Below, piece after piece: positions 11,244 through 44,382 of a stretch of 64,000 nt of DNA. The stretch is from positions 10,788,001-10,852,000 of the forward strand of contig OZ059896.1 in NCBI GenBank assembly GCA_964057225.1, given 5' to 3'. The stretch comes from Auanema rhodensis (taxonomy: Eukaryota; Animalia; Nematoda). The notes under the pieces were generated by a model. That model worked only from the letters and a program-made list of their open reading frames with translations. It did no database searches and was not told the DNA's origin. Positions within the stretch are counted from its first letter, which is position 1. Each line of letters starts with the position of its first letter. The position numbers were made by a program, and so were the translations under genes.

Positions 11244-12582
11244 CTATATGTCTTTTTTTATATTTTCTTTCTGTGAAGTTGTGTTTTCTTCAGTGGTTTT
11301 GTCGGTGCTCTTGCGGAAACGACGGAATAGTTGATGACAGCAGGAAAAGTCTAGAAAAACTGATTTGCATTGTTCAGATTTTGTATCATACCTTGTGCTG
11401 AGCAACATGAAAGTTGCCCGAAAACAAATCTAGATGCTGGCTGCGCAGGTTGGAAAGCGAACTTGAAGAAATTCTTTAGTGTAATATTTTTTCAAAAAGT
11501 TACCTGTGGTGGAATGATAGACTGGCAAGCAGCACCAATACATGGTGGAGAAGGAGCTTGGAAAACAATCTGAATTTAAAATTTAAAGTTTCACTGCTCT
11601 CTGAAGTTGTTCTGACCTTTGGTGGTGGAGGAGCACAAGCAACACCTACACATGGAGGTGGTGGAGGAGCACAAGCAACTCCTACGCATGGGGGTGGTGG
11701 GGGAGCTTGGAAGATAACCTATTTAGAACGTTTAGTGTTAAATTCAATTTTAAAATAATGAGTGTTACCTTTGGTGGTGGAGGAGCACAAGCAACTCCTA
11801 CACATGGAGGTGGTGGAGGAGCACAAGCAACTCCTACACATGGAGGTGGTGGAGGAGCACAAGCAACTCCTACGCATGGAGGTGGTGGGGGAGCTTGGAA
11901 GATAACCTATTTAGAACGTTTAGTGTTAAGTTCAATTTTAAAATGATGAGTGTTACCTTTGGTGGTGGAGGAGCACAAGCAACTCCTACACATGGAGGTG
12001 GTGGGGGTGCTTGGAAGATAACCTATTTAGAAATTAATTTGTTTTATACTATTAAGCTCAATATTACTTGCGGTGGCGCTGGAGCACAAGCAACTCCTAC
12101 GCATGGAGGTGGTGGTGGGGGTTGGAAGACAACCTGAATAGAAACTTTTGTATTGAATATATTATTCTGTATAATATTACTTGAGGTCTTGGAGGACCAC
12201 AGGCAACTCCTACGCACGGAGAGGGAGGAAGAGCTTGGAATAAAACCTAAATTTAGTAAGACTTTAAGACTGAGATCCCAGCGTAGTACCTTAGGTGGTG
12301 AAGGAGCACAAGCAACTCCGACGCATGGAGGAGGAGGAGCCTGAAGAATAACCTGAAAAATCTATGAAATTGGATGTTAATTCAAACTCACTTGTGGAGG
12401 AGAGCACGCTGTTCCGAAGCATGGTGGATTCAGAATTGGAGCTGGCATAGCAAATATCTAGAAATATATAATAAATATATTTTAATATTTCATAACCAGG
12501 TGGTATGTACCCTTTGACCACAGTTATGACATGGTTGAGCTGTTACAGCAGCTACAGAAATCAACAAAAGAATGATGTTCAT
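11244..12582 (-). CDS. Secreted Pro/Cys-rich repeat protein (PPPPPCVGVACA repeats), probably cuticle/ECM
   Basis: Signal peptide MNIILLLISVAAVTA, then repeated phase-0 exons V(I/V)FQAPPPPPCVGVACAPPPPK and a C-terminal LSCCSAQDFSCCHQLFRRFRK..*. Confidence 0.8.
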
Positions 12583-13915
12583 TTCTAAAAAAACAATGAT
12601 ATACAATGAATATTTTTATAAAATTCAGTAAAAATGCTATTAATTATTTGAAAAGGAGCAGAGCCAATGAAAATTGTGGATGTGAATTTTGGCGTGATAA
12701 GCATGTCTTTTATAGTTGTCGAGGCAAGCCAAGTATCTGGTCATTCGCAAAAAAACAGGATGGACATATAGTGAAGTGAAGTAGCTCCAGAATCCGAAGC
12801 TAATACTGGATGGAATTTTCGTGTAAAATAAACAGAACAGTTTCTGTTTGCGAAAACGAATCTTTAATTATGCTGTAGTTTATTCTACCTAGGTTTATAT
12901 TATGTGATTAATTATTCAATTATGTATTTTTTTCTATCTTTATATTACTTAGAATTTCTTTTTTTTTTAAGAATTTTCGCATTCTGCTTAATCATTATAG
13001 CACATTGAAAAATTGCTAAAGTTGCTTAGCTTATTTTTTTAATTTCAAATTTTTACTATATCTTGCTTTACATTAAAACTGTATTTATTTCTGATGTTAA
13101 ATAACTTTAAAATTACACAAATTGTTCAAAGCTGGTATTTCAAAACAAAAAGCATGTCTATGGACATCTTGATGAGCAGTTTCCGTATTCTTGTCATCTT
13201 CAAAATTTAAGCATCCCTTGTTCCAACTTGAAATGTTATCATTGACCAGTCGCCTAGCTTTATTTGAACAGTTTTGCCACCCGAACTCATACATATGTGT
13301 CTCACACAATTGGATGATTTGTTTAAACATTGTTGACAGCTTAAAGAACAAATCAACCTTCGCTCGAAAATAAACTGGACAAATCTTTATGCCTATATAT
13401 TAATATTCTATTCAAAGAAAATGCTTTACTGCCCTAATGTTTTTATATAATTAATACTTTCCCAGATACACTTTCAACACTTGCGGTGCATGTTCCATGC
13501 TGCTCACTTGAACCTATTATGGCGAAGGTGATAGAAAGTGACTTAATTCAAACCTCCAGATTAATTTAATTAATTGTAACTTGTTCAGTAAGGGTATACG
13601 ATTAAATGTAATTTAGTATATATAAACAAACAAACAATAGCAATATTATTTATCACAAAATAAAAAAAGTACATTGCTTAATCATTTGAATAATCAATGA
13701 TGTCATAATTTAACTTTGAAAAATAGTTCAAATATAACAAGTTTATGATGATATTTGGTTCCACCTGTGAAATTCCCGAATTTGAGCAAGCTGGAAAAAG
13801 CGTTGTGTCAAAATAGTGTTAGTTTTCTGATAATTAAATACAAAAAAACAGGATTTATTCAATTTTCAATTGTATAATAAAGGATATTATATTTGAACTA
13901 TGCCAAATATCTAAG

Positions 13916-13924
13916 TATATAAAG
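13916..13924 (+). promoter_or_regulatory. TATA box (TATATAAAG) of the array gene, repeated in every unit
   Basis: About 40 bp upstream of ATG 13959; AATAAA poly(A) signal at 14560-14565 downstream of the stop. Confidence 0.7.
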
Positions 13925-13958
13925 GGGGACATATTCCTCAATATTCAACAACTTCAAC

Positions 13959-14477
13959 ATGAAGTTAATCATTCTATTCGTTTCCGTCCTCGGCATCTAC
14001 TCATCACCAGGTTTTTTTTGTTTCTTACCTAATTTTCATTGACTGTTTTTAGTGACTCGTGAATCCCAGAGACAAACTTCTGTCGATCCATTCGGAAGCA
14101 CTTCCAAAACCCCACTTGATGCCAGCACCGTCGATCCTTTAGGAAGTATCACTGATTTACCAATTGATGCCAGCACCGTCGATCCATTCGGAAGTATCAC
14201 TGATTTACCAATTGATGCCAGCACCGTCGATCCATTCGGAAGCACTTCCAAAACCCCAATTGATGCCAGCACCGTCGATCCTTTAGGAAGTATCACTGAT
14301 TTACCAATTGATGCCAGCACCGTCGATCCATTCGGAAGTATCACTGATTTACCAATTGATGCCAGCACCGTCGATCCAGTCGGAAGCAACTCCAACTCAC
14401 CTAGTGTTGGAACTACCGTCGATACTTTGGGAAATGTTTCTAACGGACCTGTTGATGGTACTACGATTGCAGCATAA
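13959..14477 (+). CDS. Secreted 16-aa-module protein, copy 1 (6 modules, 158 aa)
   Basis: Exon 1 MKLIILFVSVLGIYSSP(G|gt) joined across a 42-nt GT..TTTTAG intron in frame to VTRESQRQTS-(VDPxGSxxxxPIDAST)n-tail*. Confidence 0.85.
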
Positions 14478-14828
14478 ATCTGTTCATGACAAGTCTGTGT
14501 AAGAAAGCTTAGTTTTTCACTCAGATGTGATGATAATTGTATTTGAATTGTATATTTATAATAAAACGAAATCAATTTACTTTACGTTCATTTGTAAAAA
14601 TATTAATTACATAAAAACAATAAGGCAGCAAAGCGATGTATGAAGAAATATTTTAAAGTTCAGTAGCTAGTCTAATCATATATTCAAAGTAGTTAGTATA
14701 CAATTTATATCAAACCTGATATATAATAACACATAATAGAGGCAGGTTATATTTTTTAAAGCACCATCTTTGAGACAAAGCTTGAGCATATGTCAACGCT
14801 ATCGCACTCCCAAATACAAGAAAACTGT

Positions 14829-15202
14829 TTAAAGATGTTTGTATTTCAAAAAGAGAAGATGAAGAAGACGCATTGTGCTCTGAAAATTTATAAAATAGTG
14901 TGCAAAATGTAAAAGAAATAGACCTTGAGATCACCATTAGCGATATCTTGAACTCGACTTTTGGGTTTTGGAAGTCCAGCTTCTTCTATCAACTTGAATG
15001 CAAAACTAATGTTTTTAATCTTGTCCTCGAATGATTTAGCCTTAAGAAAAAAAATGTGGAGAGGAACAAAATATCCTTCCAGCAGTCCCATCAATAAAAC
15101 GAGAAAAACGCCATCTTGAAATTGATATTCCATGCTGCTCACTTGAACCTATTATGGCGAAGGTGATAGAAAGTGACTTAATTCAAACCTCCAGATTAAT
15201 TT
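14829..15202 (-). pseudogene. Promoterless 3' fragment of pat-6 (last two exons), copy 1
   Basis: Matches pat-6 30648-31021 and breaks off at CAGATTAATTT. Confidence 0.85.
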
Positions 15203-15593
15203 AATTAATTGTAACTTGTTCAGTAAGGGTATACGATTAAATGTAATTTAGTATATATAAACAAACAAACAATAGCAATATTATTTATCACAAAATAAAA
15301 AAAGTACATTGCTTAATCATTTGAATAATCAATGATGTCATAATTTAACTTTGAAAAATAGTTCAAATATAACAAGTTTATGATGATATTTGGTTCCACC
15401 TGTGAAATTCCCGAATTTGAGCAAGCTGGAAAAAGCGTTGTGTCAAAATAGTGTTAGTTTTCTGATAATTAAATACAAAAAAACAGGATTTATTCAATTT
15501 TCAATTGTATAATAAAGGATATTATATTTGAACTATGCCAAATATCTAAGTATATAAAGGGGGACATATTCCTCAATATTCAACAACTTCAAC

Positions 15594-16352
15594 ATGAAGT
15601 TAATCATTCTATTCGTTTCCGTCCTCGGCATCTACTCATCACCAGGTTTTTTTTGTTTCTTACCTAATTTTCATTGACTGTTTTTAGTGACTCGTGAATC
15701 CCAGAGACAAACTTCTGTCGATCCATTCGGAAGCACTTCCAAAACCCCACTTGATGCCAGCACCGTCGATCCTTTAGGAAGTATCACTGATTTACCAATT
15801 GATGCCAGCACCGTCGATCCATTCGGAAGTATCACTGATTTACCAATTGATGCCAGCACCGTCGATCCATTCGGAAGTATCACTGATTTACCAATTGATG
15901 CCAGCACCGTCGATCCAATCGGAAGTATCACTGATTCACCGATTGATGCCAGCACCGATGATCTTATAAGAATTATCACACCTATGACGCCTGAAGCCTT
16001 GACCGTCGATCCATTCGGAAGCAGTTCCAAAACCCCAATTGATGCCAGCACCGTCGATCCTTTAGGAAGTATCACTGATTTACCAATTGATGCCAGCACC
16101 GTCGATCCATTCGGAAGTATCACTGATTCACCGATTGATGCCAGCACCGTCGATCCTTTAGGAAGCACTTGCAAAACCCCAATTGATGCCAGCACCGTCG
16201 ATCCATTCGGAAGTATCACTGATTTACCAATTGATGCCAGCACCGTCGATCCAGTCGGAAGCAACTCCAACTCACCTAGTGTTGGAACTACCGTCGATAC
16301 TTTGGGAAATGTTTCTAACGGACCTGTTGATGGTACTACGATTGCAGCATAA
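15594..16352 (+). CDS. Secreted 16-aa-module protein, copy 2 (11 modules, including divergent DDLIRIITPMTPEALT; 238 aa)
   Basis: Same two-exon structure, open frame. Confidence 0.85.
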
Positions 16353-16703
16353 ATCTGTTCATGACAAGTCTGTGTAAGAAAGCTTAGTTTTTCACTCAGA
16401 TGTGATGATAATTGTATTTGAATTGTATATTTATAATAAAACGAAATCAATTTACTTTACGTTCATTTGTAAAAATATTAATTACATAAAAACAATAAGG
16501 CAGCAAAGCGATGTATGAAGAAATATTTTAAAGTTCAGTAGCTAGTCTAATCATATATTCAAAGTAGTTAGTATACAATTTATATCAAACCTGATATATA
16601 ATAACACATAATAGAGGCAGGTTATATTTTTTAAAGCACCATCTTTGAGACAAAGCTTGAGCATATGTCAACGCTATCGCACTCCCAAATACAAGAAAAC
16701 TGT

Positions 16704-17077
16704 TTAAAGATGTTTGTATTTCAAAAAGAGAAGATGAAGAAGACGCATTGTGCTCTGAAAATTTATAAAATAGTGTGCAAAATGTAAAAGAAATAGACCT
16801 TGAGATCACCATTAGCGATATCTTGAACTCGACTTTTGGGTTTTGGAAGTCCAGCTTCTTCTATCAACTTGAATGCAAAACTAATGTTTTTAATCTTGTC
16901 CTCGAATGATTTAGCCTTAAGAAAAAAAATGTGGAGAGGAACAAAATATCCTTCCAGCAGTCCCATCAATAAAACGAGAAAAACGCCATCTTGAAATTGA
17001 TATTCCATGCTGCTCACTTGAACCTATTATGGCGAAGGTGATAGAAAGTGACTTAATTCAAACCTCCAGATTAATTT
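16704..17077 (-). pseudogene. pat-6 3' fragment, copy 2
   Basis: As copy 1. Confidence 0.85.
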
Positions 17078-17468
17078 AATTAATTGTAACTTGTTCAGTA
17101 AGGGTATACGATTAAATGTAATTTAGTATATATAAACAAACAAACAATAGCAATATTATTTATCACAAAATAAAAAAAGTACATTGCTTAATCATTTGAA
17201 TAATCAATGATGTCATAATTTAACTTTGAAAAATAGTTCAAATATAACAAGTTTATGATGATATTTGGTTCCACCTGTGAAATTCCCGAATTTGAGCAAG
17301 CTGGAAAAAGCGTTGTGTCAAAATAGTGTTAGTTTTCTGATAATTAAATACAAAAAAACAGGATTTATTCAATTTTCAATTGTATAATAAAGGATATTAT
17401 ATTTGAACTATGCCAAATATCTAAGTATATAAAGGGGGACATATTCCTCAATATTCAACAACTTCAAC

Positions 17469-17939
17469 ATGAAGTTAATCATTCTATTCGTTTCCGTCCT
17501 CGGCATCTACTCATCACCAGGTTTTTTTTGTTTCTTACCTAATTTTCATTGACTGTTTTTAGTGACTCGTGAATCCCAGAGACAAACTTCTGTCGATCCA
17601 TTCGGAAGCACTTCCAAAACCCCACTTGATGCCAGCACCGTCGATCCAGTCGGAAGCACTTCCAAAACCCCAATTGATGCCAGCACCGTCGATTCATTCG
17701 GAAGTATCACTGATTTACCAATTGATGCCAGCACCGTCGATCCTTTAGGAAGCACTTCCAAAACCCCAATTGATGCCAGCACCGTCGATCCATTCGGAAG
17801 CACTTCCAAAACCCCAATTGATGCCAGCCCCGTCGATCCAGTCGGAAGCAACTCCAACTCACCTAGTGTTGGAACTACCGTCGATACTTTGGGAAATGTT
17901 TCTAACGGACCTGTTGATGGTACTACGATTGCAGCATAA
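17469..17939 (+). CDS. Secreted 16-aa-module protein, copy 3 (5 modules, 142 aa)
   Basis: Same structure; carries VDPVGSTSKT and VDSFGSITDL variant modules. Confidence 0.85.
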
Positions 17940-18290
17940 ATCTGTTCATGACAAGTCTGTGTAAGAAAGCTTAGTTTTTCACTCAGATGTGATGATAATT
18001 GTATTTGAATTGTATATTTATAATAAAACGAAATCAATTTACTTTACGTTCATTTGTAAAAATATTAATTACATAAAAACAATAAGGCAGCAAAGCGATG
18101 TATGAAGAAATATTTTAAAGTTCAGTAGCTAGTCTAATCATATATTCAAAGTAGTTAGTATACAATTTATATCAAACCTGATATATAATAACACATAATA
18201 GAGGCAGGTTATATTTTTTAAAGCACCATCTTTGAGACAAAGCTTGAGCATATGTCAACGCTATCGCACTCCCAAATACAAGAAAACTGT

Positions 18291-18664
18291 TTAAAGATGT
18301 TTGTATTTCAAAAAGAGAAGATGAAGAAGACGCATTGTGCTCTGAAAATTTATAAAATAGTGTGCAAAATGTAAAAGAAATAGACCTTGAGATCACCATT
18401 AGCGATATCTTGAACTCGACTTTTGGGTTTTGGAAGTCCAGCTTCTTCTATCAACTTGAATGCAAAACTAATGTTTTTAATCTTGTCCTCGAATGATTTA
18501 GCCTTAAGAAAAAAAATGTGGAGAGGAACAAAATATCCTTCCAGCAGTCCCATCAATAAAACGAGAAAAACGCCATCTTGAAATTGATATTCCATGCTGC
18601 TCACTTGAACCTATTATGGCGAAGGTGATAGAAAGTGACTTAATTCAAACCTCCAGATTAATTT
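18291..18664 (-). pseudogene. pat-6 3' fragment, copy 3
   Basis: As copy 1. Confidence 0.85.
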
Positions 18665-19055
18665 AATTAATTGTAACTTGTTCAGTAAGGGTATACGATT
18701 AAATGTAATTTAGTATATATAAACAAACAAACAATAGCAATATTATTTATCACAAAATAAAAAAAGTACATTGCTTAATCATTTGAATAATCAATGATGT
18801 CATAATTTAACTTTGAAAAATAGTTCAAATATAACAAGTTTATGATGATATTTGGTTCCACCTGTGAAATTCCCGAATTTGAGCAAGCTGGAAAAAGCGT
18901 TGTGTCAAAATAGTGTTAGTTTTCTGATAATTAAATACAAAAAAACAGGATTTATTCAATTTTCAATTGTATAATAAAGGATATTATATTTGAACTATGC
19001 CAAATATCTAAGTATATAAAGGGGGACATATTCCTCAATATTCAACAACTTCAAC

Positions 19056-19670
19056 ATGAAGTTAATCATTCTATTCGTTTCCGTCCTCGGCATCTACTCA
19101 TCACCAGGTTTTTTTTGTTTCTTACCTAATTTTCATTGACTGTTTTTAGTGACTCGTGAATCCCAGAGACAAACTTCTGTCGATCCATTCGGAAGCACTT
19201 CCAAAACCCCACTTGATGCCAGCACCGTCGATCCTTTAGGAAGTATCACTGATTTACCAATTGATGCCAGCACCGTCGATCCATTCGGAAGTATCACTGA
19301 TTTACCAATTGATGCCAGCACCGTCGATCCATTCGGAAGCACTTCCAAAACCCCAATTGATGCCAGCACCGTCGATCCATTCGGAAGTATCACTGATTTA
19401 CCAATTGATGCCAGCACCGTCGATCCATTCGGAAGTATCACTGATTTACCAATTGATGCCAGCACCGTCGATCCTTTAGGAAGCACTTCCAAAACCCCAA
19501 TTGATGCCAGCACCGTCGATCCATTCGGAAGCACTTCCAAAACCCCAATTGATGCCAGCACCGTCGATCCAGTCGGAAGCAACTCCAACTCACCTAGTGT
19601 TGGAACTACCGTCGATACTTTGGGAAATGTTTCTAACGGACCTGTTGATGGTACTACGATTGCAGCATAA
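19056..19670 (+). CDS. Secreted 16-aa-module protein, copy 4 (8 modules, 190 aa)
   Basis: Same structure, open frame. Confidence 0.85.
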
Positions 19671-20021
19671 ATCTGTTCATGACAAGTCTGTGTAAGAAAG
19701 CTTAGTTTTTCACTCAGATGTGATGATAATTGTATTTGAATTGTATATTTATAATAAAACGAAATCAATTTACTTTACGTTCATTTGTAAAAATATTAAT
19801 TACATAAAAACAATAAGGCAGCAAAGCGATGTATGAAGAAATATTTTAAAGTTCAGTAGCTAGTCTAATCATATATTCAAAGTAGTTAGTATACAATTTA
19901 TATCAAACCTGATATATAATAACACATAATAGAGGCAGGTTATATTTTTTAAAGCACCATCTTTGAGACAAAGCTTGAGCATATGTCAACGCTATCGCAC
20001 TCCCAAATACAAGAAAACTGT

Positions 20022-20395
20022 TTAAAGATGTTTGTATTTCAAAAAGAGAAGATGAAGAAGACGCATTGTGCTCTGAAAATTTATAAAATAGTGTGCAAAA
20101 TGTAAAAGAAATAGACCTTGAGATCACCATTAGCGATATCTTGAACTCGACTTTTGGGTTTTGGAAGTCCAGCTTCTTCTATCAACTTGAATGCAAAACT
20201 AATGTTTTTAATCTTGTCCTCGAATGATTTAGCCTTAAGAAAAAAAATGTGGAGAGGAACAAAATATCCTTCCAGCAGTCCCATCAATAAAACGAGAAAA
20301 ACGCCATCTTGAAATTGATATTCCATGCTGCTCACTTGAACCTATTATGGCGAAGGTGATAGAAAGTGACTTAATTCAAACCTCCAGATTAATTT
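20022..20395 (-). pseudogene. pat-6 3' fragment, copy 4
   Basis: As copy 1. Confidence 0.85.
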
Positions 20396-20786
20396 AATTA
20401 ATTGTAACTTGTTCAGTAAGGGTATACGATTAAATGTAATTTAGTATATATAAACAAACAAACAATAGCAATATTATTTATCACAAAATAAAAAAAGTAC
20501 ATTGCTTAATCATTTGAATAATCAATGATGTCATAATTTAACTTTGAAAAATAGTTCAAATATAACAAGTTTATGATGATATTTGGTTCCACCTGTGAAA
20601 TTCCCGAATTTGAGCAAGCTGGAAAAAGCGTTGTGTCAAAATAGTGTTAGTTTTCTGATAATTAAATACAAAAAAACAGGATTTATTCAATTTTCAATTG
20701 TATAATAAAGGATATTATATTTGAACTATGCCAAATATCTAAGTATATAAAGGGGGACATATTCCTCAATATTCAACAACTTCAAC

Positions 20787-21401
20787 ATGAAGTTAATCAT
20801 TCTATTCGTTTCCGTCCTCGGCATCTACTCATCACCAGGTTTTTTTTGTTTCTTACCTAATTTTCATTGACTGTTTTTAGTGACTCGTGAATCCCAGAGA
20901 CAAACTTCTGTCGATCCATTCGGAAGCACTTCCAAAACCCCACTTGATGCCAGCACCGTCGATCCTTTAGGAAGTATCACTGATTTACCAATTGATGCCA
21001 GCACCGTCGATCCATTCGGAAGTATCACTGATTTACCAATTGATGCCAGCACCGTCGATCCATTCGGAAGTATCACTGATTTACCAATTGATGCCAGCAC
21101 CGTCGATCCATTCGGAAGTATCACTGATTTACCAATTGATGCCAGCACCGTCGATCCATTCGGAAGTATCACTGATTTACCAATTGATGCCAGCACCGTC
21201 GATCCTTTAGGAAGCACTTCCAAAACCCCAATTGATGCCAGCACCGTCGATCCATTCGGAAGCACTTCCAAAACCCCAATTGATGCCAGCACCGTCGATC
21301 CAGTCGGAAGCAACTCCAACTCACCTAGTGTTGGAACTACCGTCGATACTTTGGGAAATGTTTCTAACGGACCTGTTGATGGTACTACGATTGCAGCATA
21401 A
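20787..21401 (+). CDS. Secreted 16-aa-module protein, copy 5 (8 modules, 190 aa; module 4 differs from copy 4)
   Basis: Same structure, open frame. Confidence 0.85.
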
Positions 21402-21752
21402 ATCTGTTCATGACAAGTCTGTGTAAGAAAGCTTAGTTTTTCACTCAGATGTGATGATAATTGTATTTGAATTGTATATTTATAATAAAACGAAATCAAT
21501 TTACTTTACGTTCATTTGTAAAAATATTAATTACATAAAAACAATAAGGCAGCAAAGCGATGTATGAAGAAATATTTTAAAGTTCAGTAGCTAGTCTAAT
21601 CATATATTCAAAGTAGTTAGTATACAATTTATATCAAACCTGATATATAATAACACATAATAGAGGCAGGTTATATTTTTTAAAGCACCATCTTTGAGAC
21701 AAAGCTTGAGCATATGTCAACGCTATCGCACTCCCAAATACAAGAAAACTGT

Positions 21753-22126
21753 TTAAAGATGTTTGTATTTCAAAAAGAGAAGATGAAGAAGACGCATTGT
21801 GCTCTGAAAATTTATAAAATAGTGTGCAAAATGTAAAAGAAATAGACCTTGAGATCACCATTAGCGATATCTTGAACTCGACTTTTGGGTTTTGGAAGTC
21901 CAGCTTCTTCTATCAACTTGAATGCAAAACTAATGTTTTTAATCTTGTCCTCGAATGATTTAGCCTTAAGAAAAAAAATGTGGAGAGGAACAAAATATCC
22001 TTCCAGCAGTCCCATCAATAAAACGAGAAAAACGCCATCTTGAAATTGATATTCCATGCTGCTCACTTGAACCTATTATGGCGAAGGTGATAGAAAGTGA
22101 CTTAATTCAAACCTCCAGATTAATTT
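21753..22126 (-). pseudogene. pat-6 3' fragment, copy 5
   Basis: As copy 1. Confidence 0.85.
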
Positions 22127-22517
22127 AATTAATTGTAACTTGTTCAGTAAGGGTATACGATTAAATGTAATTTAGTATATATAAACAAACAAACAATAGC
22201 AATATTATTTATCACAAAATAAAAAAAGTACATTGCTTAATCATTTGAATAATCAATGATGTCATAATTTAACTTTGAAAAATAGTTCAAATATAACAAG
22301 TTTATGATGATATTTGGTTCCACCTGTGAAATTCCCGAATTTGAGCAAGCTGGAAAAAGCGTTGTGTCAAAATAGTGTTAGTTTTCTGATAATTAAATAC
22401 AAAAAAACAGGATTTATTCAATTTTCAATTGTATAATAAAGGATATTATATTTGAACTATGCCAAATATCTAAGTATATAAAGGGGGACATATTCCTCAA
22501 TATTCAACAACTTCAAC

Positions 22518-23276
22518 ATGAAGTTAATCATTCTATTCGTTTCCGTCCTCGGCATCTACTCATCACCAGGTTTTTTTTGTTTCTTACCTAATTTTCATTG
22601 ACTGTTTTTAGTGACTCGTGAATCCCAGAGACAAACTTCTGTCGATCCATTCGGAAGCACTTCCAAAACCCCACTTGATGCCAGCACCGTCGATCCTTTA
22701 GGAAGTATCACTGATTTACCAATTGATGCCAGCACCGTCGATCCATTCGGAAGTATCACTGATTTACCAATTGATGCCAGCACCGTCGATCCATTCGGAA
22801 GTATCACTGATTTACCAATTGATGCCAGCACCGTCGATCCATTCGGAAGTATCACTGATTCACCGATTGATGCCAGCACCGATGATCTTATAAGAATTAT
22901 CACACCTATGACGCCTGAAGCCTTGACCGTCGATCCATTCGGAAGCAGTTCCAAAACCCCAATTGATGCCAGCACCGTCGATCCTTTAGGAAGTATCACT
23001 GATTTACCAATTGATGCCAGCACCGTCGATCCATTCGGAAGTATCACTGATTTACCAATTGATGCCAGCACCGTCGATCCATTCGGAAGTATCACTGATT
23101 TACCAATTGATGCCAGCACCGTCGATCCATTCGGAAGTATCACTGATTTACCAATTGATGCCAGCACCGTCGATCCAGTCGGAAGCAACTCCAACTCACC
23201 TAGTGTTGGAACTACCGTCGATACTTTGGGAAATGTTTCTAACGGACCTGTTGATGGTACTACGATTGCAGCATAA
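22518..23276 (+). CDS. Secreted 16-aa-module protein, copy 6 (11 modules, including the divergent module; 238 aa)
   Basis: Same structure, open frame. Confidence 0.85.
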
Positions 23277-23627
23277 ATCTGTTCATGACAAGTCTGTGTA
23301 AGAAAGCTTAGTTTTTCACTCAGATGTGATGATAATTGTATTTGAATTGTATATTTATAATAAAACGAAATCAATTTACTTTACGTTCATTTGTAAAAAT
23401 ATTAATTACATAAAAACAATAAGGCAGCAAAGCGATGTATGAAGAAATATTTTAAAGTTCAGTAGCTAGTCTAATCATATATTCAAAGTAGTTAGTATAC
23501 AATTTATATCAAACCTGATATATAATAACACATAATAGAGGCAGGTTATATTTTTTAAAGCACCATCTTTGAGACAAAGCTTGAGCATATGTCAACGCTA
23601 TCGCACTCCCAAATACAAGAAAACTGT

Positions 23628-24001
23628 TTAAAGATGTTTGTATTTCAAAAAGAGAAGATGAAGAAGACGCATTGTGCTCTGAAAATTTATAAAATAGTGT
23701 GCAAAATGTAAAAGAAATAGACCTTGAGATCACCATTAGCGATATCTTGAACTCGACTTTTGGGTTTTGGAAGTCCAGCTTCTTCTATCAACTTGAATGC
23801 AAAACTAATGTTTTTAATCTTGTCCTCGAATGATTTAGCCTTAAGAAAAAAAATGTGGAGAGGAACAAAATATCCTTCCAGCAGTCCCATCAATAAAACG
23901 AGAAAAACGCCATCTTGAAATTGATATTCCATGCTGCTCACTTGAACCTATTATGGCGAAGGTGATAGAAAGTGACTTAATTCAAACCTCCAGATTAATT
24001 T
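23628..24001 (-). pseudogene. pat-6 3' fragment, copy 6
   Basis: As copy 1. Confidence 0.85.
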
Positions 24002-24392
24002 AATTAATTGTAACTTGTTCAGTAAGGGTATACGATTAAATGTAATTTAGTATATATAAACAAACAAACAATAGCAATATTATTTATCACAAAATAAAAA
24101 AAGTACATTGCTTAATCATTTGAATAATCAATGATGTCATAATTTAACTTTGAAAAATAGTTCAAATATAACAAGTTTATGATGATATTTGGTTCCACCT
24201 GTGAAATTCCCGAATTTGAGCAAGCTGGAAAAAGCGTTGTGTCAAAATAGTGTTAGTTTTCTGATAATTAAATACAAAAAAACAGGATTTATTCAATTTT
24301 CAATTGTATAATAAAGGATATTATATTTGAACTATGCCAAATATCTAAGTATATAAAGGGGGACATATTCCTCAATATTCAACAACTTCAAC

Positions 24393-24911
24393 ATGAAGTT
24401 AATCATTCTATTCGTTTCCGTCCTCGGCATCTACTCATCACCAGGTTTTTTTTGTTTCTTACCTAATTTTCATTGACTGTTTTTAGTGACTCGTGAATCC
24501 CAGAGACAAACTTCTGTCGATCCATTCGGAAGCACTTCCAAAACCCCACTTGATGCCAGCACCGTCGATCCTTTAGGAAGTATCACTGATTTACCAATTG
24601 ATGCCAGCACCGTCGATCCATTCGGAAGTATCACTGATTTACCAATTGATGCCAGCACCGTCGATCCATTCGGAAGCACTTCCAAAACCCCAATTGATGC
24701 CAGCACCGTCGATCCTTTAGGAAGTATCACTGATTTACCAATTGATGCCAGCACCGTCGATCCATTCGGAAGTATCACTGATTTACCAATTGATGCCAGC
24801 ACCGTCGATCCAGTCGGAAGCAACTCCAACTCACCTAGTGTTGGAACTACCGTCGATACTTTGGGAAATGTTTCTAACGGACCTGTTGATGGTACTACGA
24901 TTGCAGCATAA
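24393..24911 (+). CDS. Secreted 16-aa-module protein, copy 7 (6 modules; same protein as copy 1)
   Basis: Same structure, open frame. Confidence 0.85.
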
Positions 24912-25262
24912 ATCTGTTCATGACAAGTCTGTGTAAGAAAGCTTAGTTTTTCACTCAGATGTGATGATAATTGTATTTGAATTGTATATTTATAATAAAA
25001 CGAAATCAATTTACTTTACGTTCATTTGTAAAAATATTAATTACATAAAAACAATAAGGCAGCAAAGCGATGTATGAAGAAATATTTTAAAGTTCAGTAG
25101 CTAGTCTAATCATATATTCAAAGTAGTTAGTATACAATTTATATCAAACCTGATATATAATAACACATAATAGAGGCAGGTTATATTTTTTAAAGCACCA
25201 TCTTTGAGACAAAGCTTGAGCATATGTCAACGCTATCGCACTCCCAAATACAAGAAAACTGT

Positions 25263-25636
25263 TTAAAGATGTTTGTATTTCAAAAAGAGAAGATGAAGAA
25301 GACGCATTGTGCTCTGAAAATTTATAAAATAGTGTGCAAAATGTAAAAGAAATAGACCTTGAGATCACCATTAGCGATATCTTGAACTCGACTTTTGGGT
25401 TTTGGAAGTCCAGCTTCTTCTATCAACTTGAATGCAAAACTAATGTTTTTAATCTTGTCCTCGAATGATTTAGCCTTAAGAAAAAAAATGTGGAGAGGAA
25501 CAAAATATCCTTCCAGCAGTCCCATCAATAAAACGAGAAAAACGCCATCTTGAAATTGATATTCCATGCTGCTCACTTGAACCTATTATGGCGAAGGTGA
25601 TAGAAAGTGACTTAATTCAAACCTCCAGATTAATTT
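25263..25636 (-). pseudogene. pat-6 3' fragment, copy 7
   Basis: As copy 1. Confidence 0.85.
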
Positions 25637-26027
25637 AATTAATTGTAACTTGTTCAGTAAGGGTATACGATTAAATGTAATTTAGTATATATAAACAAAC
25701 AAACAATAGCAATATTATTTATCACAAAATAAAAAAAGTACATTGCTTAATCATTTGAATAATCAATGATGTCATAATTTAACTTTGAAAAATAGTTCAA
25801 ATATAACAAGTTTATGATGATATTTGGTTCCACCTGTGAAATTCCCGAATTTGAGCAAGCTGGAAAAAGCGTTGTGTCAAAATAGTGTTAGTTTTCTGAT
25901 AATTAAATACAAAAAAACAGGATTTATTCAATTTTCAATTGTATAATAAAGGATATTATATTTGAACTATGCCAAATATCTAAGTATATAAAGGGGGACA
26001 TATTCCTCAATATTCAACAACTTCAAC

Positions 26028-26546
26028 ATGAAGTTAATCATTCTATTCGTTTCCGTCCTCGGCATCTACTCATCACCAGGTTTTTTTTGTTTCTTACCTA
26101 ATTTTCATTGACTGTTTTTAGTGACTCGTGAATCCCAGAGACAAACTTCTGTCGATCCATTCGGAAGCACTTCCAAAACCCCACTTGATGCCAGCACCGT
26201 CGATCCTTTAGGAAGTATCACTGATTTACCAATTGATGCCAGCACCGTCGATCCATTCGGAAGTATCACTGATTTACCAATTGATGCCAGCACCGTCGAT
26301 CCATTCGGAAGCACTTCCAAAACCCCAATTGATGCCAGCACCGTCGATCCTTTAGGAAGTATCACTGATTTACCAATTGATGCCAGCACCGTCGATCCAT
26401 TCGGAAGTATCACTGATTTACCAATTGATGCCAGCACCGTCGATCCAGTCGGAAGCAACTCCAACTCACCTAGTGTTGGAACTACCGTCGATACTTTGGG
26501 AAATGTTTCTAACGGACCTGTTGATGGTACTACGATTGCAGCATAA
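26028..26546 (+). CDS. Secreted 16-aa-module protein, copy 8 (6 modules; same protein as copy 1)
   Basis: Same structure, open frame. Confidence 0.85.
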
Positions 26547-26897
26547 ATCTGTTCATGACAAGTCTGTGTAAGAAAGCTTAGTTTTTCACTCAGATGTGAT
26601 GATAATTGTATTTGAATTGTATATTTATAATAAAACGAAATCAATTTACTTTACGTTCATTTGTAAAAATATTAATTACATAAAAACAATAAGGCAGCAA
26701 AGCGATGTATGAAGAAATATTTTAAAGTTCAGTAGCTAGTCTAATCATATATTCAAAGTAGTTAGTATACAATTTATATCAAACCTGATATATAATAACA
26801 CATAATAGAGGCAGGTTATATTTTTTAAAGCACCATCTTTGAGACAAAGCTTGAGCATATGTCAACGCTATCGCACTCCCAAATACAAGAAAACTGT

Positions 26898-27271
26898 TTA
26901 AAGATGTTTGTATTTCAAAAAGAGAAGATGAAGAAGACGCATTGTGCTCTGAAAATTTATAAAATAGTGTGCAAAATGTAAAAGAAATAGACCTTGAGAT
27001 CACCATTAGCGATATCTTGAACTCGACTTTTGGGTTTTGGAAGTCCAGCTTCTTCTATCAACTTGAATGCAAAACTAATGTTTTTAATCTTGTCCTCGAA
27101 TGATTTAGCCTTAAGAAAAAAAATGTGGAGAGGAACAAAATATCCTTCCAGCAGTCCCATCAATAAAACGAGAAAAACGCCATCTTGAAATTGATATTCC
27201 ATGCTGCTCACTTGAACCTATTATGGCGAAGGTGATAGAAAGTGACTTAATTCAAACCTCCAGATTAATTT
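26898..27271 (-). pseudogene. pat-6 3' fragment, copy 8
   Basis: As copy 1. Confidence 0.85.
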
Positions 27272-27662
27272 AATTAATTGTAACTTGTTCAGTAAGGGTA
27301 TACGATTAAATGTAATTTAGTATATATAAACAAACAAACAATAGCAATATTATTTATCACAAAATAAAAAAAGTACATTGCTTAATCATTTGAATAATCA
27401 ATGATGTCATAATTTAACTTTGAAAAATAGTTCAAATATAACAAGTTTATGATGATATTTGGTTCCACCTGTGAAATTCCCGAATTTGAGCAAGCTGGAA
27501 AAAGCGTTGTGTCAAAATAGTGTTAGTTTTCTGATAATTAAATACAAAAAAACAGGATTTATTCAATTTTCAATTGTATAATAAAGGATATTATATTTGA
27601 ACTATGCCAAATATCTAAGTATATAAAGGGGGACATATTCCTCAATATTCAACAACTTCAAC

Positions 27663-28469
27663 ATGAAGTTAATCATTCTATTCGTTTCCGTCCTCGGCAT
27701 CTACTCATCACCAGGTTTTTTTTGTTTCTTACCTAATTTTCATTGACTGTTTTTAGTGACTCGTGAATCCCAGAGACAAACTTCTGTCGATCCATTCGGA
27801 AGCACTTCCAAAACCCCACTTGATGCCAGCACCGTCGATCCTTTAGGAAGTATCACTGATTTACCAATTGATGCCAGCACCGTCGATCCATTCGGAAGTA
27901 TCACTGATTTACCAATTGATGCCAGCACCGTCGATCCATTCGGAAGTATCACTGATTTACCAATTGATGCCAGCACCGTCGATCCATTCGGAAGTATCAC
28001 TGATTTACCAATTGATGCCAGCACCGTCGATCCATTCGGAAGTATCACTGATTCACCGATTGATGCCAGCACCGATGATCTTATAAGAATTATCACACCT
28101 ATGACGCCTGAAGCCTTGACCGTCGATCCATTCGGAAGCAGTTCCAAAACCCCAATTGATGCCAGCACCGTCGATCCTTTAGGAAGTATCACTGATTTAC
28201 CAATTGATGCCAGCACCGTCGATCCATTCGGAAGTATCACTGATTTACCAATTGATGCCAGCACCGTCGATCCATTCGGAAGTATCACTGATTTACCAAT
28301 TGATGCCAGCACCGTCGATCCATTCGGAAGTATCACTGATTTACCAATTGATGCCAGCACCGTCGATCCAGTCGGAAGCAACTCCAACTCACCTAGTGTT
28401 GGAACTACCGTCGATACTTTGGGAAATGTTTCTAACGGACCTGTTGATGGTACTACGATTGCAGCATAA
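27663..28469 (+). CDS. Secreted 16-aa-module protein, copy 9 (12 modules, including the divergent module; 254 aa)
   Basis: Same structure, open frame. Confidence 0.85.
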
Positions 28470-28820
28470 ATCTGTTCATGACAAGTCTGTGTAAGAAAGC
28501 TTAGTTTTTCACTCAGATGTGATGATAATTGTATTTGAATTGTATATTTATAATAAAACGAAATCAATTTACTTTACGTTCATTTGTAAAAATATTAATT
28601 ACATAAAAACAATAAGGCAGCAAAGCGATGTATGAAGAAATATTTTAAAGTTCAGTAGCTAGTCTAATCATATATTCAAAGTAGTTAGTATACAATTTAT
28701 ATCAAACCTGATATATAATAACACATAATAGAGGCAGGTTATATTTTTTAAAGCACCATCTTTGAGACAAAGCTTGAGCATATGTCAACGCTATCGCACT
28801 CCCAAATACAAGAAAACTGT

Positions 28821-29194
28821 TTAAAGATGTTTGTATTTCAAAAAGAGAAGATGAAGAAGACGCATTGTGCTCTGAAAATTTATAAAATAGTGTGCAAAAT
28901 GTAAAAGAAATAGACCTTGAGATCACCATTAGCGATATCTTGAACTCGACTTTTGGGTTTTGGAAGTCCAGCTTCTTCTATCAACTTGAATGCAAAACTA
29001 ATGTTTTTAATCTTGTCCTCGAATGATTTAGCCTTAAGAAAAAAAATGTGGAGAGGAACAAAATATCCTTCCAGCAGTCCCATCAATAAAACGAGAAAAA
29101 CGCCATCTTGAAATTGATATTCCATGCTGCTCACTTGAACCTATTATGGCGAAGGTGATAGAAAGTGACTTAATTCAAACCTCCAGATTAATTT
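28821..29194 (-). pseudogene. pat-6 3' fragment, copy 9
   Basis: As copy 1. Confidence 0.85.
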
Positions 29195-29585
29195 AATTAA
29201 TTGTAACTTGTTCAGTAAGGGTATACGATTAAATGTAATTTAGTATATATAAACAAACAAACAATAGCAATATTATTTATCACAAAATAAAAAAAGTACA
29301 TTGCTTAATCATTTGAATAATCAATGATGTCATAATTTAACTTTGAAAAATAGTTCAAATATAACAAGTTTATGATGATATTTGGTTCCACCTGTGAAAT
29401 TCCCGAATTTGAGCAAGCTGGAAAAAGCGTTGTGTCAAAATAGTGTTAGTTTTCTGATAATTAAATACAAAAAAACAGGATTTATTCAATTTTCAATTGT
29501 ATAATAAAGGATATTATATTTGAACTATGCCAAATATCTAAGTATATAAAGGGGGACATATTCCTCAATATTCAACAACTTCAAC

Positions 29586-30296
29586 ATGAAGTTAATCATT
29601 CTATTCGTTTCCGTCCTCGGCATCTACTCATCACCAGGTTTTTTTTGTTTCTTACCTAATTTTCATTGACTGTTTTTAGTGACTCGTGAATCCCAGAGAC
29701 AAACTTCTGTCGATCCATTCGGAAGCACTTCCAAAACCCCACTTGATGCCAGCACCGTCGATCCAGTCGGAAGCACTTCCAAAACCCCAATTGATGCCAG
29801 CACCGTCGATTCATTCGGAAGTATCACTGATTTACCAATTGATGCCAGCACCGTCGATCCTTTAGGAAGCACTTCCAAAACCCCACTTGATGCCAGCACC
29901 GTCGATCCAGTCGGAAGCACTTCCAAAACCCCAATTGATGCCAGCACCGTCGATTCATTCGGAAGTATCACTGATTTACCAATTGATGCCAGCACCGTCG
30001 ATCCTTTAGGAAGCACTTCCAAAACCCCAATTGATGCCAGCACCGTCGATTCATTCGGAAGTATCACTGATTTACCAATTGATGCCAGCACCGTCGATCC
30101 TTTAGGAAGCACTTCCAAAACCCCAATTGATGCCAGCACCGTCGATCCATTCGGAAGCACTTCCAAAACCCCAATTGATGCCAGCACTGTCGATCCAGTC
30201 GGAAGCAACTCCAACTCACCTAGTGTTGGAACTACCGTCGATACTTTGGGAAATGTTTCTAACGGACCTGTTGATGGTACTACGATTGCAGCATAA
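29586..30296 (+). CDS. Secreted 16-aa-module protein, copy 10 (10 modules, 222 aa; expanded copy-3 type)
   Basis: Same structure, open frame. Confidence 0.85.
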
Positions 30297-30647
30297 ATCT
30301 GTTCATGACAAGTCTGTGTAAGAAAGCTTAGTTTTTCACTCAGATGTGATGATAATTGTATTTGAATTGTATATTTATAATAAAACGAAATCAATTTACT
30401 TTACGTTCATTTGTAAAAATATTAATTACATAAAAACAATAAGGCAGCAAAGCGATGTATGAAGAAATATTTTAAAGTTCAGTAGCTAGTCTAATCATAT
30501 ATTCAAAGTAGTTAGTATACAATTTATATCAAACCTGATATATAATAACACATAATAGAGGCAGGTTATATTTTTTAAAGCACCATCTTTGAGACAAAGC
30601 TTGAGCATATGTCAACGCTATCGCACTCCCAAATACAAGAAAACTGT

Positions 30648-32309
30648 TTAAAGATGTTTGTATTTCAAAAAGAGAAGATGAAGAAGACGCATTGTGCTCT
30701 GAAAATTTATAAAATAGTGTGCAAAATGTAAAAGAAATAGACCTTGAGATCACCATTAGCGATATCTTGAACTCGACTTTTGGGTTTTGGAAGTCCAGCT
30801 TCTTCTATCAACTTGAATGCAAAACTAATGTTTTTAATCTTGTCCTCGAATGATTTAGCCTTAAGAAAAAAAATGTGGAGAGGAACAAAATATCCTTCCA
30901 GCAGTCCCATCAATAAAACGAGAAAAACGCCATCTTGAAATTGATATTCCATGCTGCTCACTTGAACCTATTATGGCGAAGGTGATAGAAAGTGACTTAA
31001 TTCAAACCTCCAGATTAATTTTGTTCAAATGTCTGTTACAAAACGTAATAAGAGATTCTTTTACTTGAGCTAGTTTATCTGGACCAAAATCAAACAATGT
31101 GTCGAAAGCATCACGATCTCCCTGAATAAAGCAATGATAAATTAAAAAATATATATTTGTAAATACCTTTAAACCGAGTTCATCTTGTGTAGTAGTTAAT
31201 TGTTCAACAGCATTTTCAGTTTTGATATGTCCTTGCTGTTTAGAAGCAATGACCATCTTTAAATATTTGATTTATAGCCATAATAGAAAATAAAGTATTA
31301 CTTTAGCTGATACATATTCTGGAAGACGAATGGGAGCACGGAAATGAATAGCAAGAGCGATCAGAAATTGCAAAATTGCCACAAGATCCTAGAAAATTCA
31401 AAAAGTTTAAAGAAATTTGAAATCAGAACGACCTTCGAGTGGATGAGTTCTGGCGTCCACTTTTGATCATGTTGCCCTTTGCTCAAAAGACGGTTTCCGG
31501 TGGCAATAACAATTTGAAGTTTTTGTCTTTGTCCTTCCTCTGATTGCGAGACCTCAGGAACTTCAATCTGTAAAACAAAAATATGGTTCAAATCCATAAT
31601 AGTATCAAGTTTTACTCTTATGTTCCCCAATTTTTCCACAAGTTTCTGAAGAATTTGACCATCATATAAGTCTTCTTGAACATGACGTACCTGAAGTAAA
31701 AAAATATATAAAATAAAACAATCATTGGTTACAAACATAAAGAAAACAGTAGAAATTGTCAACAACTTGTAGTGTATTTTTATTTTTTAAATAAAATAAA
31801 CTTCATAAATTAACAAACTTACGACAATACGCTGATCAGCAAGCTCCTCATTGAGCCAATGCACAAGAAGATATATTAGTTCTCTCATTTTAGGATCATT
31901 ATTAGTTTCCTTCGTAATGAAACGAACAGTTTCGCCTAGAATTCATATTGATAATTATAATCAACATGTTTTCCTACCTTCATCTATGATAATATCTTTG
32001 GCTAAATATGGAACTGTGGCAGAATCCAAAGCTTCACGACCTTCAATGTCAACCTTAACGAATAAGAAAATGAAAAGTAACCGAATCAAAAATAATAAAT
32101 TTACCTCCACAGCCTCATTCTCCTCATTCTCTTCGTTATTTTCATTAACTGGCTTCTTTTTTTTTCGTGTTAAGGTTCCGGTAAGTTTCTCCACAAACGA
32201 TTCATTCTTTTCAAAATATGTAATAAATATACGCATATTATTAAAAAATTACTTTTTGGCTTTTCATGGTATCTGCAGGGCCTGTGCTTTTTCTTCCCAG
32301 AGTTGACAT
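30648..32309 (-). CDS. pat-6: Parvin/actopaxin (two calponin-homology domains)
   Basis: MSTLGRK..FVEKLTGTLTRKKK, WLNEELADQRIVVRHVQEDLYDGQILQKL, IEVPEVSQSEEGQRQKL, RDAFDTLFDFGPDKL, QFQDGVFLVLLMGLLEGYFVPL and DIANGDLKSTMRLLHLLFLKYKHL*. Confidence 0.95.
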
Positions 32310-32647: not shown

Positions 32648-36703
<4,056 letters not shown>

Positions 36704-44018: not shown

Positions 44019-44382
44019 AAATAATTTAATAAATGATTAGAATAATTATATTTTCTTCTTATTTGTCATTCAACTAAATAATCAGTATATCCTTGTTTTT
44101 ATATATTGTAATAATTATTTCATTATAAACACTATGTACTACTAAATTGTTTTATTTGAAATATAACATAAAAAAAAAGAATTTTATCAAATATAAAATG
44201 AGGACAAGCATATAATAGTCTATGACATAAGCTTTTTGTTTGAAAAAAAGTGATAAAGAAATGTCAAATATGAACATTTCACCCGAAGTTGTGATGATAC
44301 TAGATACAATAAATTGTATTTTAGCAAACAATATTAAAATTCCAACCAGCTGAGTACTGTTGTAAAGAGAAATTAATAAAGC

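Follow-up and report, generated by a model that had tools for sequence, protein, structure and literature searches.

The stretch analysed here is a window of 64,000 nt from contig OZ059896.1 of Auanema rhodensis (GCA_964057225.1, positions 10,788,001 to 10,852,000), AT-rich eukaryotic DNA that belongs to contig C4 of a 181-Mb assembly (G000 below). On its plus strand lies a macro-array of ten tandem units followed by a 73-nt overhang (13493–31021), and each unit carries a two-exon gene in which a putative signal-peptide exon is joined, across a 42-nt intron, to an exon built from 48-bp repeats. The spacers between these genes are invariant, yet the repeat arrays form eight distinct strings among the ten genes.

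The gene model is most easily followed in copy 1 (13959–14477). Its exon 1 (13959–14010, 52 nt) opens with an ATG at 13959 and encodes MKLIILFVSVLGIYSSP, which by inspection, no predictor being used, reads as an N-terminal hydrophobic signal peptide. The phase-1 intron (14011–14052, GT..AG) joins this exon in frame to the repeat exon (14053–14477), which begins with VTRESQRQTS, continues in 48-nt modules and ends at a TAA stop 12 nt beyond the last module. A TATA-like box precedes the gene at 13916–13923, and an AATAAA signal (14560–14565) follows 83 nt past its end. All of these signals, from TATA-like box, ATG and signal peptide to intron, stop and AATAAA, are identical in the ten units.

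For the repeat exons, the ten exon-2 open reading frames (ORFs) were cut into 48-nt rows, which yielded 103 modules: 83 internal ones, running from 14083 to 30188, and two degenerate end modules in every copy (VDPVGSNSNSPSVGTT and VDTLGNVSNGPVDGTT). The row alignment bears out the module anatomy described for the 83 modules in a first-pass annotation of the window, namely a constant block, a variable slot A, a constant GGAAG and a variable slot B. The slot-A sequences are ATTC for F, TTTA for L, AGTC for V and AATC for I, and slot B encodes ITDLP or TSKTP. A 22-nt constant block was found 80 times on the plus strand with at most three mismatches, against 0 expected by chance, and Tandem Repeats Finder (TRF) reported period-48 arrays in ten places, with period-144 arrays in most. 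Minor slot-B variants are ITDSP (four modules), SSKTP (three) and TCKTP (one); a Pro-to-Ser change directly before slot A (VDSF) occurs in four modules, and a PL/PI site lies behind slot B. Counted over the 83 modules, ITD-type slot B is combined with F in 30, L in 14, SF in 4 and I in 1, and T-type slot B with F in 21, L in 7 and V in 3. This agrees with the earlier statement that both F and L are combined with either type of slot B; V was seen with TSKTP only. A very divergent module, DDLIRIITPMTPEALT (the DDLIR module), is present in copies 2, 6 and 9 (15957–16004, 22881–22928 and 28074–28121, plus strand); compared with the common ITDLP module, 21 of its 48 bases are different, and these are scattered along its full length.

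Seventeen nucleotide module types were lettered, 15 of them internal. Types A (F/ITDLP), B (L/ITDLP), F (F/TSKTP) and G (L/TSKTP) represent the four combinations of the two main slot-A and slot-B states, and C is the fixed first module. The others are L (V/TSKTP), H (VDSF/ITDLP), K (F/ITDSP), M (I/ITDSP), I (the DDLIR module), J (F/SSKTP), the one-base variants N, O and Q, and the chimera P; D and E denote the end modules. Type G, the fourth gamete of the test described below, is found five times on the plus strand (19467–19514 and with starts at 17736, 21198, 29997 and 30093), and a one-base derivative of it starts at 16149. The first module (C) and the last two (D and E) are fixed and more divergent than the rest, which is the usual edge effect of arrays under unequal exchange. 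A coding minisatellite is recognized by head-to-tail, in-frame repetition of a 10–100 bp unit within an ORF and by a few variant units that are interspersed in differing orders, with copy-number differences of whole units. The cluster shows both features: its period is 48 bp, each gene has 5–12 internal units, all in frame, and the 15 internal types form eight distinct strings among the ten genes.

Written in these letters, the internal modules of copy 1 are CBAFBA (six, followed by the two end modules), and the same string is carried by copies 7 (24393–24911) and 8 (26028–26546), all on the plus strand like the remaining copies; units 1, 7 and 8 are in fact identical over their full length. 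Copy 2 (15594–16352; 11 modules, CBAAMIJBKNA) is the most mosaic array. Copy 3 (17469–17939; five modules, CLHGO) is of beta type. Copies 4 (19056–19670; CBAFAAGF) and 5 (20787–21401; CBAAAAGF) have eight modules each, copy 6 (22518–23276) has 11 (CBAAKIJBAAA), and copy 9 (27663–28469) has 12 (CBAAAKIJBAAA), which is copy 6 with one module duplicated. Copy 10 (29586–30296) has ten modules, CLHPLHGHGQ.

The units that carry these arrays follow one another with periods of 1635, 1875, 1587, 1731, 1731, 1875, 1635, 1635 and 1923 bp. Outside the arrays not a single variant was found across the units in 13,545 nt of spacer, lead and end modules, which consist of nine full 1347-nt spacer-plus-end-module segments and two partial ones at the ends of the macro-array. 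Near-identical non-coding spacers combined with exchange between units characterize a tandem gene family under concerted evolution, and both are observed here. The order of array types in units 1-2-3 (13493–18700), that is short alpha, long alpha with DDLIR, and beta, recurs in units 8-9-10 (25900–31021), which suggests that a three-unit block was duplicated and that its arrays changed later with the spacers unchanged. The same 73-nt sequence bounds the macro-array on both sides (13493–13565 and 30949–31021), which is what an exchange between two short direct repeats would leave behind if it had given rise to the first duplication; it comprises 14 nt of an exon of the adjoining parvin gene, a 40-nt intron and 19 nt of the next exon. 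Within the genome the gene family is restricted to this cluster, and no second copy, alternative contig or second haplotype of the locus was found in the 181-Mb assembly. A search of the window against Rfam gave no match.

The first-pass annotation had proposed that exchange or gene conversion takes place within modules, and had suggested a test for recombination between slots A and B. A four-gamete test on the 80 alignable internal modules (19 variable sites) found incompatibility only between slot A (positions 9 and 12) and slot B (positions 18–30) and between slot A and position 34. The Hudson–Kaplan Rm is 1, and six haplotypes over three 'loci' set a bound of at least two events; exchange between the slots did occur, but only little of it is required. 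One of these events is directly legible in module P (29853–29900, plus strand), a chimera that combines the L slot A of a G-type (L/TSKTP) module with the C34 of the first module. It stands exactly at the junction of a 144-bp (three-module) duplication in copy 10, and this duplication yields copy 10 only when it starts 12–33 nt into a module. This makes module P the junction of an unequal exchange between two TSKTP-type modules. Any of the 21 nt common to both modules could hold its break point, which therefore cannot be assigned to the stretch between the slots in particular. To obtain the fourth combination of F/L with ITDLP/TSKTP, either an exchange with an end point in the 5-nt GGAAG or a repeated two-base change is needed. 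Whichever it was, that event is old, since the G-type module lies in the same 3' block of copies 3, 4, 5 and 10 (G, followed by F or by a variant one base away from it, and finally D and E).

The distribution of differences along the module points in the same direction. Common ITDLP and TSKTP modules differ at 10 of the 13 slot-B bases and at none of the 35 bases elsewhere, synonymous sites included (p ~1.6e-6), whereas the old modules diverge throughout (at the 35 outside positions, 16 differences in DDLIR, 8 in D and 11 in E). Such mosaic divergence would mean either that the constant block was homogenised across two old module lineages or that slot B was at one time replaced wholesale. Aligning the two types of slot B with a codon shift offered an origin no more economical than divergence of the block. 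Exchange inside modules is therefore upheld by the four-gamete failure, the chimera and the mosaic divergence, and it is real but rare: the data call for only about two events, and free or frequent swapping of the slots is not supported.

Copies 4 and 5 had been presented as the key example of a slot swap. They are indeed of equal length (exon 2 of 522 nt and units of 1731 nt in each), and their units differ at exactly 10 bases (19340–19352), all in slot B of module 4, which is F/TSKTP in copy 4 (19323–19370, plus strand) and F/ITDLP in its copy 5 counterpart (21054–21101). However, copy 4 equals a copy 1 prefix joined to a copy 5 suffix, and copy 5 equals the prefix of copy 2, 6 or 9 joined to a copy 4 suffix. 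A single crossover between paralogs, located in the constant block, explains the whole difference; its break point comes after slot B of module 4, from array base 175 as a lower bound to base 201 or further. Both copies have F in slot A, so the pair is uninformative on the independence of the slots.

Similar steps account for most of the other arrays. With explicit steps checked at the base level, six of the seven other distinct arrays were derived from two founders. One duplication turns copy 6 into copy 9, and two deletions plus a single base change turn it into copy 1. Copy 5 results from a crossover of copy 9 with a beta array and one subsequent duplication, and copy 4 from a crossover of copy 1 with copy 5. 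The beta founder, CLHGF, leads to copy 3 by one base change and to copy 10 by the 144-bp duplication that creates P, a 96-bp (two-module) duplication and one base change. All of these verified steps, whether duplications, deletions, paralog crossovers or single-base changes, are possible without a break in GGAAG. Copy 2 is set apart from copy 6 by two single-base changes, a two-base ITDSP patch in module 9 and the replacement of module 10 by a G-derived module, in which both slots moved together. Since the spacers are invariant, the deep differences between module types cannot postdate the amplification. An economical reading is that the module types were already present inside one ancestral, longer and mixed array (or in two alleles), and that the copies kept different subsets of it, which could have happened through deletion, duplication and paralog exchange.

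We regard it as likely that the ten copies form a tandem family, derived from an orphan nematode gene by very recent amplification or homogenisation, and that the gene's 48-bp (16-residue) coding minisatellite is rearranged by misaligned exchange. In this model the arrays would change by homology-driven misaligned exchange, both within an array and between gene copies, probably through unequal crossing-over, sister-chromatid exchange and break repair with gene conversion. Breaks would fall wherever two misaligned modules match, mostly in the 26-nt constant block, so that in most events whole modules, or blocks of two to three modules, would seem to have been gained, lost or transferred; an occasional break elsewhere would leave a chimeric module. 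The 'slots' would then be the few places where homogenisation of the rest of the module has left differences, namely those between two old lineages (the ITDLP-type and the TSKTP-type) and those of a two-base F/L variant, and one old exchange ending in the 5-nt GGAAG would suffice to produce all four F/L by ITDLP/TSKTP combinations.

The main alternative is the reading of the first-pass annotation in its fullest form, in which slots A and B would be exchanged often and independently, by short-tract gene conversion within modules, so that each gene would be a free combinatorial barcode of charge and potential glycosylation sites. We consider this unlikely, although several observations speak for it: all four combinations exist, copies 1 and 4 are distinguished at module 5 by slot A alone, just as copies 4 and 5 differ by one slot B, copy 2 shows in-place patches relative to copy 6, and the constant block is homogenised where slot B is not. 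That F/L and slot B are not associated within modules (odds ratio 1.07) would also fit, but this results from a three-module higher-order repeat (F/T, L/I, F/I; TRF period 144), and slot A is tied more tightly to the preceding slot B (odds ratio 6.2, p 0.009, with non-independent modules); the association test is confounded on both counts and was not used as evidence on exchange. Frequent swapping is further contradicted by the small number of events required, by the crossover that accounts for copies 4 and 5 and by the finding of no intermediate slot-B haplotypes among the internal modules. Moreover, V, SF and I are each confined to one slot-B type despite repeated copying, so reassortment is slower than duplication. 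The opposite extreme, which the annotation had named as the outcome that would count against it, allows no exchange inside modules and derives every string from one ancestor by whole-module duplication or deletion and point mutation. Most array differences are in fact whole- or multi-module gains and losses, and runs of identical modules do vary in length (copies 5, 6 and 9); nevertheless this account is extremely improbable in our estimation, as it needs CCA TTC to become CCT TTA twice and A34C to occur twice, and it explains neither the position of chimera P at a duplication junction nor the concentration of lineage divergence in slot B. Just as improbable, we think, is a targeted or programmed diversification by a locus-specific mechanism (editing, hypermutation or directed conversion), of the sort that had at one time been suggested for the HYP effectors of cyst nematodes. 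Invariant spacers, rearranged arrays and fixed first and last modules do resemble the HYP 'rules' (PMC11228951), and the arrays have an excess of point variants over the spacers. Yet homology surrounds each rearrangement that was examined, and ordinary misaligned exchange reproduces all of them. Even the diversity of HYP1 has meanwhile been ascribed to homology-directed events that arise spontaneously in the germline (PMC13577501), and the window shows no enzyme gene, template array or inverted donor associated with the arrays.

Two further alternatives question the locus itself rather than its mode of change. The perfect identity of the 1347-nt spacers and of three whole units describes a structure that is hard to assemble, and the number of units or the array strings could have been mis-assembled from a shorter or differently ordered locus. 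We give this very little weight, since the arrays are clean multiples of 48 nt with sharply defined variants, the array types recur in order between units 1-2-3 and 8-9-10, and the assembly contains no second copy or alternative contig. It is equally hard to believe that the repeat is a non-coding minisatellite beside a chance ORF from which no protein is made. The databases searched hold no homologues or transcripts, several frames are open across the arrays and the point changes look neutral, all of which such a sequence would show; however, the signal-peptide exon is spliced in phase to the repeat frame, a stop directly follows the array, promoter and poly(A) signals accompany all ten units, the arrays are well above their surroundings in G+C, and the diverged end modules keep a V-D..G..SN.P..GTT pattern in this very frame.

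Some results nonetheless weigh against the preferred model of a recently amplified coding family shaped by misaligned exchange. No transcript, protein or homologue of the gene was found in any searched collection, so its expression and coding status are read from sequence signals, and two other frames are open across the arrays. The in-place replacements in copy 2 were not derived by crossovers, and short conversion patches are their simplest reading. The event scenario is explicit and partly verified, but its approximately 15 events are an upper bound and not a proven minimum. Four private single-base variants (M, N, O and Q) fall in 3,984 nt of array against 0 in 13,545 nt of spacer (p 0.003), a mild excess that plain neutral turnover of units does not predict and for which mutagenic repair, selection or homogenisation of the spacers by conversion are possible causes. 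By our reading the point changes comprise about 8 non-synonymous and 3 synonymous ones, which indicates neither clear purifying nor clear positive selection. With regard to the additional frames, an antisense frame is open through the arrays (minus strand, 14036–14575 and the corresponding positions of every unit), and another sense frame is open at 23011–23301 and 28204–28494 (plus strand); these extra ORFs measure 163–275 aa and 96 aa, respectively. They are a by-product of the repeat, and ORF length alone is no proof of coding here.

Beyond the model itself, the cluster might be a germline repertoire that is kept diverse, with rearrangement measurable per generation, perhaps faster mutation in arrays than in spacers, selection for both slot-B types and a secreted mixture of isoforms of unequal charge and O-glycan density. 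We think this unlikely; if true, it would make the cluster a free-living-nematode counterpart of the HYP effectors.

Protein searches and fold prediction were performed with exon 2 only. Pfam returned no family above its cut-off, and in particular neither WD40 repeats nor a STAND NTPase domain, as an HNWD-type protein would contain, at that cut-off. A word-index protein search with copy 4 exon 2 gave no match, and the ESM Atlas gave none scoring 0.9 or more. A HMMER scan of 1.84 billion representatives produced 185 matches, all to compositional repeat proteins and none with a 16-residue unit; these came from sea urchin, green and brown algae and bacteria, the best-looking being a sea urchin protein with a 12-residue repeat. 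AlphaFold2, run on the single sequence of copy 9 exon 2, returned a low-confidence model (predicted local distance difference test score, pLDDT, 41.6). The mature products would have 125–237 residues with 28–35% Ser+Thr, ~11% Pro and ~13–15% Asp. The charge effect attributed to slot B, a switch from an acidic and hydrophobic segment to a basic, hydroxyl-rich one, is genuine: each change from ITDLP to TSKTP removes one negative charge, adds one positive charge and adds two hydroxyl residues, and the net charge of the products ranges from -9 to -33. The predicted product would be a small secreted protein, strongly acidic, rich in Ser, Thr, Pro and Asp, and probably disordered. Secretion, disorder and any role of charge or glycosylation are what we infer, and our best guess is a secreted, disordered and possibly O-glycosylated component of a matrix or surface coat, whose dosage would be raised by the tandem amplification. 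The gene has no known relatives.

The sole genomic match outside the cluster (G000 C6, E 2e-4) was rejected, as it involves the antisense frame of an unrelated mucin-like gene. That gene (G000 C6, 6315500–6321500) has an open frame of at least 1413 codons and encodes a classic mucin-like protein with ~31-residue Ser/Thr/Pro/Gly repeats; it is unrelated to the cluster, and only its antisense frame matched, weakly. Elsewhere in the assembly, at ~6.74–7.10 Mb of G000 C3, there is a very large tandem array of spliced-leader RNA genes (spliced leader 1, SL1) with a spacing in multiples of 252 bp. It carries the exact canonical 22-nt SL1, with scores of 54–62 bits, just under the Rfam cut-off of 75. 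Canonical SL1 arrays in the genome identify it as that of a nematode.

The cluster abuts a pat-6-like parvin gene on the minus strand, whose last two exons (~30743–30967 and 30648–30698) encode part of a CH domain (alpha-parvin match, E 4e-27) and which continues upstream from 31008 to ~32300. The same two exons are present base for base in each of the nine other units (e.g. 14829–15148). They encode the C-terminal part of the CH domain, so there are nine orphan copies of the 3' end beside the functional copy at ~30648–30967, and the right edge of the macro-array (31021/31022) falls 14 nt inside the third-last parvin exon. On the other side of the cluster, a minus-strand gene at ~11440–12585 starts with a signal peptide (MNIILLLISVAAVTAQP...) followed by many small exons, each encoding one to three copies of a Pro-rich, two-cysteine unit (..APPPPPCVGVACAPPPPK..). 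TRF detects periods of 36, 111 and 188 bp in it, and its product is a second repeat protein, built exon by exon, beside the cluster. Further away, exons recognized by eye in the ORF list belong to a DEAD-box helicase with DDX46/PRP5-like motifs (34800–36300, minus strand) and to a stearoyl-CoA desaturase with HRLWSH and HNYHH histidine boxes (44380–45650, minus strand), both ordinary flanking genes.

Among known systems, the HYP effectors of potato cyst nematodes behave similarly, with constant flanks, fixed first and last motifs and in-frame motif rearrangements (PMC4177990, PMC11228951, PMC13577501). HYP1 motif arrays behave alike in yeast, where their diversity was reproduced (PMC13577501). 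Like HYP, the cluster encodes a nematode protein that is (here by prediction) secreted, with in-frame arrays of a few short motif variants in a single exon; motif number and order vary, flanks are constant, starts and ends are fixed, neighbour rules are non-random and rearrangements are embedded in homology. Unlike the HYP motifs of 5–6 residues (15–18 bp; YERGGG, SDRGGG, RDRGD; PMC11228951), however, the unit here has 16 residues (48 bp, VDPxGS..P[IL]DAST), and the HYP motif set was not found in the modules. HYP variation is moreover allelic, at single-gene loci of plant parasites that express these genes in gland cells, whereas the variation described here is between ten paralogs in one assembly. 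As for the HYP flanks, no significant non-compositional match appeared among the 1.84 billion proteins, HYP sequences not being compared directly.

Human minisatellite variant repeat (MVR) analysis and the yeast FLO/ALS adhesins are useful comparison cases for coding minisatellites. Such loci, reviewed in general in PMC3899988, share with the cluster the scale of a 48-bp unit, interspersed variant repeats, polarised or diverged edges, length changes by whole units and, now and then, conversion-like patches. In both, a copy can be recognized by its repeat string as by a 'digital code'; here, in contrast, the code separates tandem paralogs with base-identical spacers. Mucin-like secreted glycoproteins with Pro/Thr/Ser repeats include the surface-coat mucins of nematodes. 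The predicted product resembles them in its signal peptide, its tandem Ser/Thr/Pro-rich repeats, its predicted disorder and its variable repeat number, but its Ser+Thr content is only 28–35%, it is very Asp-rich with a strongly negative net charge, and it has conserved hydrophobic residues; the genuine mucin of this genome, on G000 C6, looks quite different. The WD40 repeat of the Podospora anserina hnwd genes is 126 bp long. In these genes (het-d/e/r), as in the cluster, repeats are homogenised within and between paralogs, few positions are variable, and loss, gain and shuffling are frequent, with rearrangements that create new chimeric repeat units (PMC2873952). The hnwd products, though, belong to the intracellular STAND proteins; their WD40 repeats are folded, and positive selection at the binding positions is proven, whereas the product here is short, predicted to be secreted and apparently disordered, and there is no sign of selection on the slots.

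Because its motifs and domains differ, the cluster is not a member of the HYP or HNWD family but an orphan coding minisatellite in a tandem gene family; the mechanism is ordinary, and nothing calls for a new one. It offers a compact example of the joint evolution of a coding minisatellite and a tandem gene family, in which the sequence itself reveals a paralog crossover and a chimeric module that can be dated. Should the species prove culturable, the locus could be a tractable system for measuring rates of repeat rearrangement in a nematode. It could also be a free-living reference against which to set the HYP effector loci, which are under debate.

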